Source of the DNA: Scyliorhinus canicula | Lineage: Eukaryota | DNA length: 64,000 bases | Direction: 5' to 3' | Assembly: GCF_902713615.1 (NCBI RefSeq) | Contig: NC_052171.1 | Span: 1,612,001-1,676,000, forward strand | Part shown: in pieces, positions 23,809 through 41,672 of the stretch | Position numbering within the stretch: the stretch's first letter is position 1 | Layout of the letters: each line of letters starts with the position of its first letter | The notes under the pieces: generated by a model | Database searches by the model: none | Seen by the model: the letters and a program-made list of their open reading frames with translations, nothing else | What the model was told of the DNA's origin: nothing | Position numbers and translations under genes: made by a program

Positions 23809-26800
23809 CTGCCTGCTCCCTGTGCTGCACTCTGCCAGCTCCCTGTGCTGCACTCTGCCAGCTCCCTGTGCTGCACTCTGCCAGCTCCCTGTGCTGCGCT
23901 CTGCCTGCTCCCTGTGCTGCACTCTGCCAGCTCCCTGTGCTGCGCTCTGCCAGCTCCCTGTGCTGCGCTCTGCCAGCTCCCCGTGCTGCACTCTGCCAGC
24001 TCCCTGTGCTGCACTCTCCCAGCTCCCTGTGCTGCGCTCTCCCAGCTCCCTGTGCTGCACTCTGCCAGCTCCCTGTGCTGCACCCTGCCAGCTCCCTGGG
24101 CTGCACTCTGCCAGCTCCCTGTGCTGCACTCTGCCAGCTCCCTGTGCTGCACTCTGCCAGCTCCCTGTGCTGCACTCTGCCAGCTCCCTGTGCTGCACTC
24201 TGCCAGCTCCCTGGGCTGCACTCTGCCAGCTCCCTGTGCTGCACTCTGCCAGCTCCCTGTGCTGCACTCTGCCAGCTCCCTGTGCTGCACTCTGCCAGCT
24301 CCCTGTGCTGCCAGCTCCCTGTGCTGCACTCTGCCAGCTCCCTGTGCTGCGCTCTCCCAGCTCCCTGTGCTGCGCTCTGCCAGCTCCCTGTGCTGCACCC
24401 TGCCAGCTCCCTGTGCTGCGCTCTCCCAGCTCCCTGTGCTGCGCTCTCCCAGCTCCCTGTGCTGCGCTCTGCCAGCTCCCTGTGCTGCACCCTGCCAGCT
24501 CCCTGTGCTGCACTCTGCCAGCTCCCTGTGCTGCACTCTGCCAGCTCCCTGTGCTGCACCCTGCCAGCTCCCTGTGCTGCACCCTGCCAGCTCCATGTGC
24601 TGCACTCTGCCAGCTCCCTGTGCTGCACTCTGCCAGCTCCCTGGGCTGCACTCTGCCAGCTCCCTGTGCTGCGCTCTCCCAGCTCCCTGTGCTGCGCTCT
24701 GCCAGCTCCCTGTGCTGCACTCTGCCAGCTCCCTGTGCTGCACTCTGCCAGCTCCCTGTGCTGCACTCTGCCAGCTCCCTGTGCTGCACTCTGCCAGCTC
24801 CCCGTGCTGCACTCTGCCAGCTCCCTGTGCTGCACTCTGCCAGCTCCCTGTGCTGCACTCTGCCAGCTCCCTGTGCTGCGCTCTGCCAGCTCCCTGTGCT
24901 GCGCTCTGCCAGCTCCCTGTGCTGCGCTCTGCCAGCTCCCTGTGCTGCACCCTGCCAGCTCCCTGTGCTGCACTCTGCCAGCTCCCTGTGCTGCACTCTG
25001 CCAGCTCCCTGTGCTGCACTCTGCCAGCTCCCTGTGCTGCACCCTGCCAGCTCCCTGTGCTGCACCCTGCCAGCACCCTGTGCTGCGCTCTGCCAGCTCC
25101 CTGTGCTGCGCTCTGCCAGCTCCCTGTGCTGCGCTCTGCCAGCTCCCTGTGCTGCGCTCTGCCTGCTCCCTGTGCTGCGCTCTGCCAGCTCCCTGTGCTG
25201 CACTCTGCCAGCTCCCTGTGCTGCACTCTGCCAGCTCCCTGTGCTGCACTCTGCCAGCTCCCTGTGCAGCACTCTGCCAGCTCCCTGTGCTGCACTCTGC
25301 CAGCTCCCTGTGCTGCACTCTGCCAGCTCCCTGTGCAGCGCTCTGCCAGCTCCCTGTGCTGCACTCTGCCAGCTCCCTGTGCTGCACTCTCCCAGCTCCC
25401 TGTGCTGCACCCTGCCAGCTCCCTGTGCTGCACTCTGCCTGCTCCGTGCTGCACTCTGCCAGCTCCCTGTGCTGCACTCTGCCAGCTCCCTGTGCTGCAC
25501 TCTCCCAGCTCCCTGTGCTGCACCCTGCCAGCTCCCTGTGCTGCACTCTGCCAGCTCCCTGTGCTGCACTCTGCCAGCTCCCTGTGCTGCACTCTGCCAG
25601 CTCCCTGTGCTGCACCCTGCCAGCTCCCTGTGCTGCACTCTGCCAGCTCCCTGTGCTGCGCTCTGCCAGCTCCCTGTGCTGCGCTCTGCCAGCTCCCTGT
25701 GCTGCGCTCTGCCAGCTCCCTGTGCTGCGCTCTGCCTGCTCCCTGTGCTGCACTCTGCCAGCTCCCTGTGCTGCACTCTGCCAGCTCCCTGTGCTGCACT
25801 CTGCCAGCTCCCTGTGCTGCACTCTGCCAGCTCCCTGTGCTGCACTCTGCCAGCTCCCTGTGCTGCACTCTCCCAGCTCCCTGTGCTGCACTCTGCCAGC
25901 TCCCTGTGCTGCACTCTCCCAGCTCCCTGTGCTGCACTCTGCCAGCTCCCTGTGCTGCACTCTGCCAGCTCCCTGTGCTGCACTCTGCCAGCTCCCTGTG
26001 CTGCATTCTGCCAGCTCCCTGTGCTGCACTCTGCCAGCTCCCCGTGCTGCACTCTGCCAGCTCCCCGTGCTGCACTCTGCCAGCTCCCCGTGCTGCGCTC
26101 TGCCTGCTCCCTGTGCTGCACTCTGCCAGCTCCCTGTGCTGCACTCTCCCAGCTCCCTGTGCTGCACTCTGCCAGCTCCCTGTGCTGCACTCTGCCAGCT
26201 CCCTGTGCTGCACTCTGCCAGCTCCCTGTGCTGCATTCTGCCAGCTCCCTGTGCTGCACTCTGCCAGCTCCCCGTGCTGCACTCTGCCAGCTCCCCGTGC
26301 TGCACTCTGCCAGCTCCCCGTGCTGCGCTCTGCCTGCTCCCCGTGCTGCACTCTGCCAGCTCCCTGTGCTGCGCTCTGCCTGCTCCCTGTGCTGCACTCT
26401 GCCAGCTCCCTGTGCTGCGCTCTGCCAGCTCCCTGTGCTGCGCTCTGCCTGCTCCCTGTGCTGCACTCTGCCAGCTCCCTGTGCTGCGCTCTGCCAGCTC
26501 CCTGTGCTGCACTCTGCCAGCTCCCTGTGCTGCACTCTGCCAGCTCCCTGTGCTGCACTCTGCCAGCTCCCTGTGCTGCACTCTGCCAGCTCCCTGGGCT
26601 GCACTCTGCCAGCTCCCTGTGCTGCACTCTGCCAGCTCCCTGTGCTGCACTCTGCCAGCTCCCTGTGCTGCACTCTGCCAGCTCCCTGTGCTGCACTCTG
26701 CCAGCTCCCTGTGCTGCATTCTGCCAGCTCCCAGTGCTGCACTCTGCCAGCTCCCCGTGCTGCACTCTGCCAGCTCCCCGTGCTGCACTCTGCCAGCTCC

Positions 26801-27626
26801 CCGTGCTGCGCTCTGCCTGCTCCCTGTGCTGCACTCTGCCAGCTCCCTGTGCTGCGCTCTGCCTGCTCCCTGTGCTGCACTCTGCCAGCTCCCTGTGCTG
26901 CGCTCTGCCAGCTCCCTGTGCTGCGCTCTGCCTGCTCCCTGTGCTGCACTCTGCCAGCTCCCTGTGCTGCGCTCTGCCAGCTCCCTGTGCTGCACTCTGC
27001 CAGCTCCCTGTGCTGCACTCTGCCAGCTCCCTGTGCTGCACTCTGCCAGCTCCCTGTGCTGCACTCTCCCAGCTCCCTGTGCTGCACTCTGCCAGCTCCC
27101 TGTGCTGCACTCTGCCAGCTCCCTGTGCTGCACTCTGCCAGCTCCCTGGGCTGCACTCTGCCAGCTCCCTGTGCTGCACTCTGCCAGCTCCCTGTGCTGC
27201 ACTCTCCCAGCTCCCTGTGCTGCACTCTGCCAGCTCCCTGTGCAGCACTCTGCCAGCTCCCTGTGCAGCACTCTGCCAGCTCCCTGTGCTGCACTCTCCC
27301 AGCTCCCTGTGCTGCACTCTGCCAGCTCCCTGTGCTGCACTCTGCCAGCTCCCTGTGCTGCACTCTGCCTGCTCCCTGGGCTGCACTCTGCCAGCTCCCT
27401 GGGCTGCACTCTGCCAGCTCCCTGTGCTGCACTCTGCCAGCTCCCTGTGCTGCACTCTGCCAGCTCCCTGTGCTGCACTCTGCCAGCTCCCTGTGCTGCA
27501 CTCTGCCAGCTCCCTGTGCTGCACTCTGCCAGCTCCCTGTGCTGCACTCTGCCAGCTCCCTGTGCTGCACTCTGCCAGCTCCCTGTGCTATACTCTGCCA
27601 GCTCCCTGTGCTATACTCTGCCAGCT
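23809..27626 (+). repeat. 23-bp minisatellite (TGTGCTGCACTCTGCCAGCTCCC)n, about 166 copies
   Basis: Direct reading; 23-aa periodicity in all six ORF frames. Confidence 0.98.
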
Positions 27627-27679
27627 ATGCCCATTGCCACCCTGCCTCTTGCTCCCTCTCTGGTGAATTCTCTGCCTTT

Positions 27680-27760
27680 GAAAGGCGGAGCCGGTGGCCT
27701 TGGCCGCCTTTCCGCGACGTCACCGCGTCTATAAAAGGCGGCTGGGCGGGCTGGAGCGGG
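27680..27760 (+). promoter_or_regulatory. SLC20A1 core promoter: CRE-like GACGTCA (27716-27722), TATA box TATAAAAG (27730-27737), GC box GGGCGG (27744-27749)
   Basis: Motifs read directly; at the 5' edge of a CpG island (about 27680-28930). Confidence 0.75.
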
Positions 27761-28007
27761 AGATGGCGGACAGCTGGCGGTCAGGACAGTGACTTTGTCT
27801 CCGGAGCCGGACATTCAGCAGCGGACCCCCCCTCACCCCCCGGAGCGACCCTCTCCCTCCTCAAGCCCCCCTCCCCCGGTGCTGCGGCGCCGCCTCCCTT
27901 CCACCGCCGAGTGGGATTCAACTGACCTGAGAGCGCGGCAGCTGGGCCTTGCCGGCCGCGCTTCCAACTTCACCCTCGCACCGACTAGAATCGCATCGGT
28001 TTAATTG
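27760..28007 (+). other. SLC20A1: Probable non-coding exon 1 of SLC20A1 (start approximate)
   Basis: Starts about 30 nt downstream of TATAAAAG inside a CpG island; donor TTG|GTGAGT at 28008; partner acceptor TTTCCGCAG| at 30490. Confidence 0.75.
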
Positions 28008-28219
28008 GTGAGTGCGGTGATTGTTGTTGTCGGGGAGAGGACGGCGACACACGGATTGGGCTGGGGGGCGGGGGGGGCAGCAACAACCGCACGGGGCGGG
28101 CGGCGGATTCCGGAACAATCCGGCTGCGGCCTCCATTCATTCCACAGGCGGCGCGAGGGGGAGCTCGCGGCAATCAGCGGCCTCGGCTGGCAAACGGTCA
28201 TCGGCGCGAGATCCGGGCC

Positions 28220-28446
28220 GACTGTCCCCGCGGGGGGGGGGGGCTGTCCGCGCGCCCGCGGGGGGAGGGGGGCGACTGTCCGCGCGCCCGCGGGGGGGGG
28301 GGGGGCTGTCCGCGCGCCCGCGGGGGGGGGGGGGGCTGTCCGCGCGCCCGCGGGGGGGGGGGGCTGTCCGCGCGCCCGCGGGGGGGGGGGGGGCTGTCCG
28401 CGCGCCCGCGGGGGGGAGGACTGTCCGAGGGGGGGGGGGGGGGGGT
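28220..28446 (+). repeat. GC-rich tandem repeat (G)n-CTGTCCGCGCGCCCGC, about 7 units, SLC20A1 intron 1
   Basis: Direct reading. Confidence 0.9.
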
Positions 28447-28525
28447 GACGTGACCTCTGGGACTGCAGGCTGAGATGTGGGGGGTGGAATGTTGTCTGAG
28501 CATTGGGGGGGGGGGGGGGGTTAAT

Positions 28526-28594
28526 GGGTACCCCTGCCCACCCGGCGGGGTACCCCTGCCCACCCGGCGGGGTACCCCTGCCCACCCGGCGGGG
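28526..28594 (+). repeat. 22-bp tandem repeat GGGGTACCCCTGCCCACCCGGC x3
   Basis: Direct reading. Confidence 0.9.
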
Positions 28595-30491
28595 AGAGGA
28601 TGACCCTGCGGTGGGGGTGAGGCGGTCTCTCCTTTAGCTAGGATGGTGGGACACCTGTCGATGGGACTGATAGCGGCTGGAGAGCCGTTTGCCTGTCTGT
28701 CCTTCCCAGCCCCAGGAGGCAGATGGGTGGCTGGGTTGACAGATCTGCGCCCTGGGGGGGGAGCATCCTTTGCATCCTGTTTACTCTTGGAAACGTTGCA
28801 AAGAGGCGCGAAAAGGGATGGTGCTTTAAATTGAAAATAATAAATTGTCGACATCGAGCGCGTCGTGAAAATTGGGTTGGGCTCTTTAAATTTCGTCCAC
28901 AACGTCTGATCAAAGCGTCTGCCCACACGGATAATAGGCAGGATTTAGTTTTTAGCTTTTAGTTAAATTAAATGAGAAAATCGTTATCATTAAATGAGAA
29001 AATCGCAGTCGCAAGAGACTTGAGTGGAACCGCCGATTTCCATCAACCGAAGGGTTGGGCTGTAGAGCTTAGACTGAATAGATTCCGTGGCAAAAACACT
29101 TGACCGACAGCTTAAAGTTTTATTTCTGGAATCCACAAGCACCTGAGGACTACTCGTTGACACCACAGATCAACCAACTCCCTGAACCCCTCCATATCGC
29201 CCTCAAATTATGCCCTGTTTTGGTCGTCCTCTATTTGAAAGGAAGTACATTTGAGGAGTTGGTTTTTGGAGGAGTTACATTGAGAGCATTGTTTTTGAGT
29301 CGTTTTTAATATAAATTTAGAGTACTCAGTTTTTTTTTCAATTAAGGGGCACTTTAGCGTGGCAAATCCACGGTTGTGGGGGTGAAAACCATGCAAGCAC
29401 AGGGGGAATGTGCAAACTTCACATGGACAATGTTTTCTGAGTCTTTTGGACCATTGCATATCATGAGACCAATCTTTTTCACTGGTTGTAAGTAGCGAGC
29501 TGTGAGGAGATTCTCTTTCTTAAATGTCCGCTCCTCACAATAGAGACTCCCTGAGAGATGAATGTTAAATAAGAGACAGTTAAAGGCAAAATGGTACTTT
29601 ACAGGATGAGGAAAGGGAGTTCTAGAATAGTCCTTGATACCTGAAGAAATAGCCCTCGTTGTGCTCAATGCACAAAATGCTTTTTGAAGTAAGTACAGTT
29701 GAATAATGGAGTTACATTTGGACAAGAATTTTCTGTGTGCGCAGGATTGAGAGTTTGACAGCAGAAATCTGGATGAATGCGGTTTGTGGAATAGATAACA
29801 GAATTTTGAGAGCTGCATCTTGCTTTTGTTGGGGGGGGGGCAGAGGACTCAATTTTCTTCCCCACCCCCATGTGACCAATCACCTACCCTGCACATCTTT
29901 GCATTGTGGAGTGAGACCCACACAGACACTTGAGTGAGAATATGCAAACTCAACACGGACACTGGGCTGGATCGAAGCCGGGTCCTCGGTGCCGTGTGGC
30001 AGCAATGCTAATCACTGCGCCACTCGGAAAGAGTTCCGTGTATGTTGGCAGCCCCCTGGTATCTGCTGTAGAAAGCATCTATCATACAGTAGAAATGCAA
30101 TGCAGTTTGCACTTGATAGCTTAACTTGTATTTCCTGCTGAAATAACTAAATTTGATTTCTTGGAAAATGAATGACGACTTCATATCACCACTGCTGATA
30201 GATAGTATTTTAATGTTTTTGAACTGTAGCAATTTCAACAAACCTGCATATGTGATAGTCAAATCTCTCTGGTTTTGAACTGTACCAATTGAATCTGCTG
30301 TTTGAGAGGTGAAGTGATATTGTACTACATTTTCAGATTCACTTTTGGTTTATCTTCTAGATAGGAAGCAAATGATAGGGGTGAATGGGCTTATTGACCT
30401 AGTGTAGCGCTTTGGACCCATGTGGCATACATTGATTAATGGACAGATGGTATTCGATATTTATAGCATGTTCTCCTCTTATTTCCGCAGG

Positions 30492-30548
30492 ATGAAGAAC
30501 ATCCCAAATCTACTGTGTCCACAATGGGTTTCACTTCAATCATTCTAA
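30492..30548 (+). other. uORF1, 18 aa: MKNIPNLLCPQWVSLQSF*
   Basis: ATG at second base of exon 2; overlaps uORF2 in another frame; TAA at 30546-30548. Confidence 0.55.
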
Positions 30549-30601
30549 TTGTTGACTGTTGTAAAAACCGTCCAAGACAGACTATTAAACACAGTGGATA
30601 G
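30524..30601 (+). other. uORF2, 25 aa: MGFTSIILIVDCCKNRPRQTIKHSG*
   Basis: ATG in strong Kozak context (ACAATGG); TAG at 30599-30601. Confidence 0.7.
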
Positions 30602-30768
30602 CAATTACTGCTGCACAATACTTCAGTGTAGTGCATATTAATCTTCATTATTTAATCCAGTTATTTATTACATATCAAAATATTTTGTTACCTTATTTTG
30701 TATATTTAAGTCAATAGTATTTTTTTTAAAACTCAGTACCTCTAAAAGCATTACAAGCCCGAGTGACC

Positions 30769-41672
<10,904 letters not shown>

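Follow-up and report, generated by a model that had tools for sequence, protein, structure and literature searches.

The window analysed here, a stretch of 64,000 nucleotides of Scyliorhinus canicula DNA, contains the first three exons of SLC20A1, the gene for PiT-1. PiT-1 and its paralogue PiT-2 import phosphate together with sodium and are ubiquitous in vertebrate cells. We identified the following features around the translation start of the gene.

27730 to 27737, + strand: putative TATA box of the SLC20A1 promoter, TATAAAAG, predicted from sequence
27866 to 28007 (minimum extent), + strand: exon 1, non-coding, from spliced contigs with a GT..AG joint 28007/30491
30491 to 31057, + strand: exon 2, a 278-nt leader and the first 96 PiT-1 codons, from the joints 28007/30491 and 31057/31593
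30492 to 30548, + strand: uORF1, 18 codons, MKNIPNLLCPQWVSLQSF followed by a stop, with its AUG at exon-2 nucleotide 2
30524 to 30601, + strand: uORF2, 25 codons in ACAAUGG context with a UAG stop then C, as read in the genomic letters
30602 to 30768, + strand: intercistronic spacer, AU-rich and AUG-free, 167 nt, with no ATG against 2.1 expected
30769 to 31057, + strand: main ORF start (ACCAUGG) and exon-2 coding part of SLC20A1 (PiT-1), from a PHO4 match and a tree
31593 to 31733, + strand: exon 3, from the joints 31057/31593 and 31733/32357

Transcript structure and the two upstream frames

Transcript evidence was taken from contigs of four runs from four studies, which were placed on 27650-32600. 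In each of the four runs a single contig joins 28007 to 30491, 31057 to 31593 and 31733 to 32357, all with GT..AG borders, and the acceptor of exon 2 (tttccgcag/G) places the start of this exon at 30491. All sampled exon 2 words are present in 18 public runs of the same organism from seven studies. Because the joints recur in four runs from four studies, they show both the exon boundary and the presence of uORF2 in the mature mRNA, and uORF2 is thereby confirmed as a real part of the spliced message. Exon 1 pieces spanning 27866-28006, 27900-28006 and 27926-28006 connect with exon 2 in three of the four runs (X1, X2 and X4). The exon probably starts near 27760; TATAAAAG at 27730 lies about 135 nt upstream of 27866, the 5'-most position in the listed spliced contig pieces. 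No ATG was read within 27766-28007. A strong-context ATG (GAGATGG) opens a 9-codon ORF at 27763-27792 (MADSWRSGQ, then a stop), about 33 nt after TATAAAAG, and it would represent a third uORF only if transcription begins upstream of 27763.

Several repeats lie around these exons. The interval 23809-27626 is a GC-rich minisatellite whose units measure about 23 nt (including ctgtgctgcactctgccagctcc); it has 65-67% GC and a strong skew and ends about 100 nt before the putative TATA box. In intron 1, directly after exon 1, a unit made of a G-run and then CTGTCCGCGCGCCCGC is repeated in tandem (28220-28420). Intron 2 contains an interspersed repeat at 31100-31430, with a word depth of up to about 7e5 in transcript-derived contigs and with GAATCGAACCTGGGACCCTGGCGCTG at its loose ends, which looks like a tRNA-derived SINE; another copy lies in the same genome just upstream of SLC20A2 exon 2 (L009:1080-1110).

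The coding part of exon 2 (30769-31056) matches the Pfam PHO4 family (8e-24) over residues 24-95 of its product. The shark's own genome (4.2 Gb, 646 contigs) holds two copies of the exon, one in the window (contig C26) and one in a separate SLC20A2-type locus, L009 (contig C8). In a tree built on exon 2 alone and anchored with proteins named by their sources (bear SLC20A1, human and pig SLC20A2), the window groups with named SLC20A1 and apart from SLC20A2, L009 groups with SLC20A2, and the split has support of 92/96 over 89 exon-2 residues. Therefore, based on this grouping, we assign the gene in the window to SLC20A1 (PiT-1).

The window from 30480 to 30610 reads tatttccgcag/GATGAAGAACATCCCAAATCTACTGTGTCCACAATGGGT and onward to CACAGTGGATAGCAA. 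The ATG of uORF2 at 30524 stands 33 nt into exon 2 in the context tccACAATGG and opens 25 sense codons encoding MGFTSIILIVDCCKNRPRQTIKHSG, closed by TAG at 30599-30601. The main ATG follows at 30769 (gtgACCATGG), 167 nt after the uORF2 stop. The preliminary description had reported the same coordinates, context, length and distances for uORF2, and all of them are correct on re-reading the sequence. What it did not contain is uORF1, which overlaps the start of uORF2 in another frame. Counted from the A of the uORF2 AUG, the last nucleotide of the uORF1 stop codon (TAA, 30546-30548) is at +25. In the window, for which the context in spliced mRNA is known, the uORF1 AUG lies in uugGAUGA, with U at -3 and A at +4, and is therefore weak, whereas the context of uORF2 is optimal.

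The spacer contains a conserved AU-rich block at about 30650-30705 (TTATTTATT followed further on by TTACCTTAT), which is visible in the alignment of SLC20A1 leaders. Its arrangement of TTATTTATT and then TTTTG.TACCTCAT is common to the shark, amphibian-like, sauropsid-like and mammalian SLC20A1 leaders and is found in part in fish. The element TTATTTATT resembles an ARE nonamer, and TACCTCA in the alignment resembles a let-7 seed match, at which the window itself reads TACCTTA.

Conservation of start, stop, length and spacer

A protein search with the exon-2 product returned 743 N-terminal fragments. In most of these the predicted gene continues from exon 2 into the intron, and so the genomic contigs behind them also contain the leader. 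From these contigs, a search of the shark's own genome and one JGI metagenome scan we obtained 13 further distinct exon-2 loci, ten of SLC20A1 type and three of SLC20A2 type including the paralogue from the same genome, which together with the window make 14. Taxon labels of Logan contigs were inferred from protein N-termini and base composition and are to be read accordingly. The metagenome scan yielded one usable vertebrate locus, the teleost L020, and one with too little upstream sequence (L021). The uORF2 peptides and their lengths in sense codons are as follows.

Window, SLC20A1, shark: MGFTSIILIVDCCKNRPRQTIKHSG, 25 codons
L001, SLC20A1, second shark-like locus with 90% amino-acid identity: MDFISIPLTAGCCKDCKRQTIKRSG, 25 codons
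L002/L003, SLC20A1, placental: MEFCSLLLALQSQRNPRQQMPIRSV, 25 codons
L018, SLC20A1, rodent-like: MEFCSVLLALQSQRNPRQQTPKRSV, 25 codons
L004-L007, SLC20A1, sauropsid-like: MAFRAAPLAPRSPRRPAPQMPARSV, 25 codons
L015, SLC20A1, GC-rich, bird-like: MARHAVPNPCSRRGFRMARPPRAL, 24 codons
L014, SLC20A1, amphibian-like: MEFSSPVTHQSQRNSKKPISIQSK, 24 codons
L010/L011, SLC20A1, teleost: MAVSSLCLIARHQSINKRSSIITG, 24 codons
L020, SLC20A1, teleost: MAVLIGVTSQHKRNKNRSSLITG, 23 codons
L019, SLC20A1, fish: MDVRSVCLIGQTKTHCSSTSLFRG, 24 codons
L012/L013, SLC20A1, second teleost paralogue: MDICPVFRLCNSLMKPTHKPCIPT, 24 codons
L009, SLC20A2, this shark: MECIHLLIASSLRNCVNTTQRSIS, 24 codons
L016, SLC20A2, mammal-like, exon-2 core identical to human SLC20A2: MECVLPLTEHSQMNCTDSSLKTSS, 24 codons
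L017, SLC20A2, fish-like: MECFLQPPSLVSNLWTELQTLS, 22 codons

A homologous uORF of 22-25 codons is present at the same position in all 14 loci (11 SLC20A1-type and three SLC20A2-type), across distant taxa. Its AUG has a purine at -3 and G at +4 in every one of them, and its stop is invariably TAG followed by C, preceded by A in 11 of 11 SLC20A1-type loci. When ten SLC20A1 leaders were aligned with MAFFT, the only invariant columns besides the main start codon were C..ATGG and ATAGC. The lengths of uORF2 are 75, 72, 69 or 66 nt, so that all differences are multiples of three, and the segments around it are variable, with 20-40 nt before uORF2 and 74-271 nt after it. Within the uORF2 interiors of 13 loci there are no in-frame stops, compared with 19 and 20 stops in the other two frames. 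In the placental-type contigs GCCATGG opens the frame, in L002/L003 as well as in L018, and the two peptides differ at 2-3 of 25 residues from the string given for human in the preliminary description. That description had also suggested conservation from shark to human, which the alignment bears out with respect to position, Kozak context and length (22-25 codons, in every gnathostome locus sampled) and which is extended here to SLC20A2.

The spacer between uORF2 and the main AUG is nearly free of AUG codons. Across 13 loci we counted two spacer ATGs, both in L012, whereas shuffles that preserve dinucleotides lead one to expect 21.7, and every one of 2000 such shuffles contained at least eight. 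The spacer of L020, which stands outside this 13-locus test, has no ATG either. Thus the element has the sequence properties of a strong-Kozak short uORF, with the favorable AUG context in 14 of 14 loci and termination upstream of a main AUG that is reached across an almost AUG-free spacer. Non-vertebrate PiT homologues from the metagenome scan (L022-L025) have leaders without similarity to uORF2, and the remaining matches of that scan are microbial. One of these homologues, on a metagenome contig with 64% identity (L022:1-255), has tiny leader uORFs of two, five and seven codons, none of which is similar to uORF2.

The overlapping partner, uORF1, is found in ten of the 11 SLC20A1-type loci, where it starts at exon-2 nucleotide 2 or 3, and in none of the three SLC20A2-type loci. 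Its stop falls at +23 to +25 from the A of the uORF2 AUG in seven of nine tabulated loci and is TAA in sharks, TAG in amniote-type loci and TGA in two fishes. A stop whose position is kept as its identity switches is what selection on stop function predicts. The second teleost SLC20A1 paralogue (L012:1718-2003) has lost uORF1, and five further ATGs precede its main ATG downstream of the uORF2 start codon, three inside uORF2 and two in the spacer. It retains a 24-codon uORF2 that opens in ACAATGG and closes with TAG-C; in this teleost duplicate the module may have begun to relax.

Judged from these alignments, it is the frame itself, in its start, stop and length, that appears conserved, and not the peptide. 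The presence of the frame in both paralogues suggests that the uORF gate is probably older than the split between SLC20A1 and SLC20A2.

Frame, peptide or nucleotides as the object of selection

A short upstream frame kept over such distances could be kept for its peptide, and the preliminary description had proposed a conserved peptide similar to those of AMD1 or the fungal arginine attenuator. This reading finds little in the substitution pattern. The window and placental peptides are identical at seven of 25 residues. Of these, M1 is given by the start codon and L8 falls on the uORF1 stop (NTA-A, NTA-G or NTG-A). At position 2 the Kozak G at +4 imposes a GNN codon in every case, yet the window has the residue G and placentals have E. 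We calculated pN/pS by the Nei-Gojobori method for six pairs, using the other two frames over the same nucleotides as controls. The two sharks differ by 12 non-synonymous changes and one synonymous change (pN/pS 3.4) and the other pairs give 0.4-0.7, so that the range of 0.4-3.4 is no lower than that of the out-of-frame controls, which are 0.4-1.6 or are undefined where there is no synonymous change. Mean pairwise identity at codon positions one, two and three is 0.44, 0.34 and 0.40, respectively (codons 10 to the end, 13 loci), and hence second positions are the least conserved, which is the opposite of a coding signature. Purifying selection on amino acids was not detected by pN/pS or by codon-position identity in this sample of 13 loci, which is small and may miss weak selection on a few residues. 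Since neither measure gave a coding signature, we rejected a CPuORF as the main explanation.

A more specific form of the same idea holds that the nascent uORF2 peptide acts in the ribosome tunnel, possibly together with Pi or inositol pyrophosphate, and stalls the ribosome, thereby gating PiT-1. We consider it unlikely. It can call on the uORF2 interior, which is alignable between shark and placental (z 4.4) and between the SLC20A1 and SLC20A2 paralogues (z 3.2-5.4), in both cases above the neighboring spacer, and this similarity does imply that the paralogous uORFs are homologous and that some residual sequence constraint exists. There are also recurring islands, namely ME[FC] at the N-terminus, S-Q-[RM]-N in tetrapod SLC20A1 and mammal-like SLC20A2, and [RK]-S-x before the stop, and both the invariable UAG-C and the length of 22-25 codons are typical of termination-stalling uORFs. 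However, the bird-like, amphibian-like, teleost and shark peptides share almost nothing past M1, the residues at positions 2 and 8 are tied to the Kozak context and to the uORF1 stop, and the pN/pS values and codon-position identities run against coding. Still less can be said for a stable 25-residue micropeptide functioning in trans, which we regard as very improbable. A strong Kozak context predicts efficient initiation and the N-terminal half is hydrophobic in sharks and mammals, but the peptide evolves as fast as the non-coding frames and the hydrophobic run is absent from the sauropsid-like, bird-like and amphibian-like loci.

The lack of codon periodicity would equally suit conservation at the level of nucleotides, unrelated to translation, in which an exonic or splicing enhancer, a site for an RNA-binding protein or an RNA structure is maintained and the ORF is incidental. 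The whole exon-2 leader is unusually conserved, including the non-ORF AU-rich block of the spacer (TTATTTATT to TACCTCAT), and GATGAAGAA at the start of the exon looks like a purine-rich splicing enhancer. Yet the positions that never vary coincide precisely with the two ends of the frame, the start codon in its Kozak context and the stop codon; the length differences keep the frame, and in-frame stops are absent where each other frame has about 1.5 per locus. The uORF1 stop switches its identity and not its position, and depletion of downstream AUGs makes sense only for scanning ribosomes. As to structure, a search of Rfam with E up to 1 over 27600-31200 gave no match, and the single-sequence fold of the leader was no better than that of shuffled sequences (z -1.2). 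In the predicted fold the last codons of uORF2 pair with sequence 5' of its AUG; this helix seemed conserved by eye and was dropped because RNAalifold on ten loci gave no consensus pairs in the uORF region. Translation of a human SLC20A1 uORF has moreover been reported, as displayed in a published figure (PMC8262740). Altogether we find conservation for reasons other than translation quite unlikely, and the comparison favors selection that would act on the act and geometry of uORF translation rather than on the peptide.

A proposed reinitiation gate and its relation to known uORF systems

An AUG in optimal context captures most scanning 43S complexes. Reinitiation can follow a uORF shorter than about 30 codons, provided that a spacer allows the ternary complex to be reacquired, and DENR-MCTS1 promotes recycling and reinitiation after short uORFs. 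Against this background, we think it likely that an ancient module of two uORFs makes translation of PiT-1 depend on reinitiation. Given its optimal Kozak context, uORF2 would be where most scanning ribosomes initiate, translate 25 codons and terminate at UAG-C, and the chief source of PiT-1 would be 40S subunits that go back to scanning, cross the 167-nt spacer and initiate again at the main AUG. The spacer may be kept AUG-free so that these subunits reach that AUG. The weak-context AUG of uORF1, at the first possible position of exon 2, would be used by a minority of ribosomes, and because uORF1 ends just inside uORF2 we propose that this minority skips the uORF2 AUG. The ratio of initiation at uORF1 and uORF2, together with the efficiency of recycling and reinitiation (DENR-MCTS1, level of ternary complex), would then set the output of PiT-1. 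We infer this flow of ribosomes through the module, and likewise its validity in sharks.

The invariant UAG-C and the narrow range of lengths suggest that the kinetics of termination or recycling at the uORF2 stop matter. A barrier that is independent of sequence does not fully explain the UAG-C, the tight length and the similarity of interiors among distant loci (z 3-5). One could go further and suppose that the PiT module, predating the duplication into SLC20A1 and SLC20A2 (a uORF1/uORF2 pair in the former, a single uORF2 in the latter), couples synthesis of the transporters to a cellular signal, either phosphate or inositol-pyrophosphate status or eIF2-dependent stress, with the UAG-C context and the fixed length of 22-25 codons serving regulated termination and reinitiation and not constitutive dampening. 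We hold this extension to be rather unlikely, and a link of uORF2 with phosphate or inositol pyrophosphate in particular is pure speculation.

Published data from mammals bear on the proposed gate. An AUG uORF of human SLC20A1 appears among the top-ranked translated uORFs in Fig. 2A of the Trips-Viz paper (PMC8262740), and Castelo-Szekely et al. reported that on Denr knock-down the translation efficiency of the mouse Slc20a1 coding sequence goes down and 5'UTR occupancy goes up (PMC6547434), a result of profiling only, in a study that built no Slc20a1 reporter. The preliminary description had stated that no functional description was known, which is not quite right given these records of translation in human and DENR-dependence in mouse. 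It had also called the element a candidate translational switch for PiT-1. Since the mammalian leader is translated and the main ORF depends on a reinitiation factor (PMC8262740, PMC6547434), the term translational gate is reasonable; the part of the proposal that makes the peptide a sensor is unsupported. In the article texts that we searched, uORFs of SLC20A1 or SLC20A2 came up only in the Trips-Viz figure, the DENR study and one constraint table (PMC11909976); we found no description there of the deep conservation, the overlapping pair or the phosphate link, and the main text of the animal CPuORF catalogue does not mention SLC20A (PMC7530721). Regulatory uORFs that depend on reinitiation are an established class, and translation of this one in mammals has been recorded. 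The new findings are how deeply and precisely it is conserved, the overlapping partner uORF and the origin shared with the SLC20A2 uORF.

The closest counterparts are the DENR-MCTS1-dependent stuORFs, with which the element shares an AUG in optimal context, 22-25 codons, termination well upstream of the main ORF, a spacer of 74-271 nt free of AUGs and a mammalian orthologue, mouse Slc20a1, reported as DENR-dependent (PMC6547434). It differs from them in having two overlapping conserved uORFs, an invariable UAG-C and a length held over a great span of evolutionary time and across two paralogues, and the DENR data come from mouse cells only. With the ATF4 and GCN4 switches it has in common two uORFs whose relative use could set the output of the main ORF and a probable dependence on reinitiation. 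However, in those systems a downstream uORF overlaps the main coding sequence or abuts it out of frame, whereas here the inhibitory uORF2 is clear of it, ending 74-271 nt before it in all loci, and uORF1 overlaps the start of uORF2 instead of lying upstream. The AMD1 MAGDIS, AZIN1 uCC and fungal AAP elements are similar in that a uORF of a metabolite-handling gene keeps its position over a long evolutionary distance, but they are defined by amino-acid conservation and peptide-dependent stalling, and in uORF2 no selection on amino acids is detectable.

Start context, stop and length (within three codons) are held in both paralogues and in all sampled jawed-vertebrate lineages, which we consider strong comparative evidence for translational gating in the control of PiT. 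As a kind the element is ordinary, conserved regulatory uORFs being well known. The comparison nevertheless defines the exact nucleotides for mutation, namely the two AUGs, the UAG-C, the length and the AUG-free spacer, and it corrects an expectation, as the peptide does not appear to be what selection maintains. Haploinsufficiency of SLC20A2 causes primary familial brain calcification, and dosage of the transporter is clinically relevant. A 2024 paper, as cited in PMC12404772, reports variants that introduce uORFs in patients with this disease. Should the coupling to a cellular signal be true, variants in the native uORF would be relevant to the reading of SLC20A2 5'UTR variants in brain calcification.

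A human SLC20A2 uORF, c8riboseqorf45, is listed in the GENCODE Ribo-seq ORF set as mutationally constrained and with the age 'Primatomorpha' (PMC11909976). It is a translated leader uORF of the paralogous gene, and the 24-codon uORF of the mammal-like locus L016, which begins ME-C, may be identical to it. If so, its age is far beyond 'Primatomorpha', because the shark's own SLC20A2 (L009) has the uORF, and the published age may need correction. The uORFs of the three SLC20A2-type loci (L009:1239-1250, L016:140-151 and L017:1245-1256) all begin with ATGGAATG, in which a second, out-of-frame ATG follows 5 nt after the first and opens ORFs of 6-14 codons.
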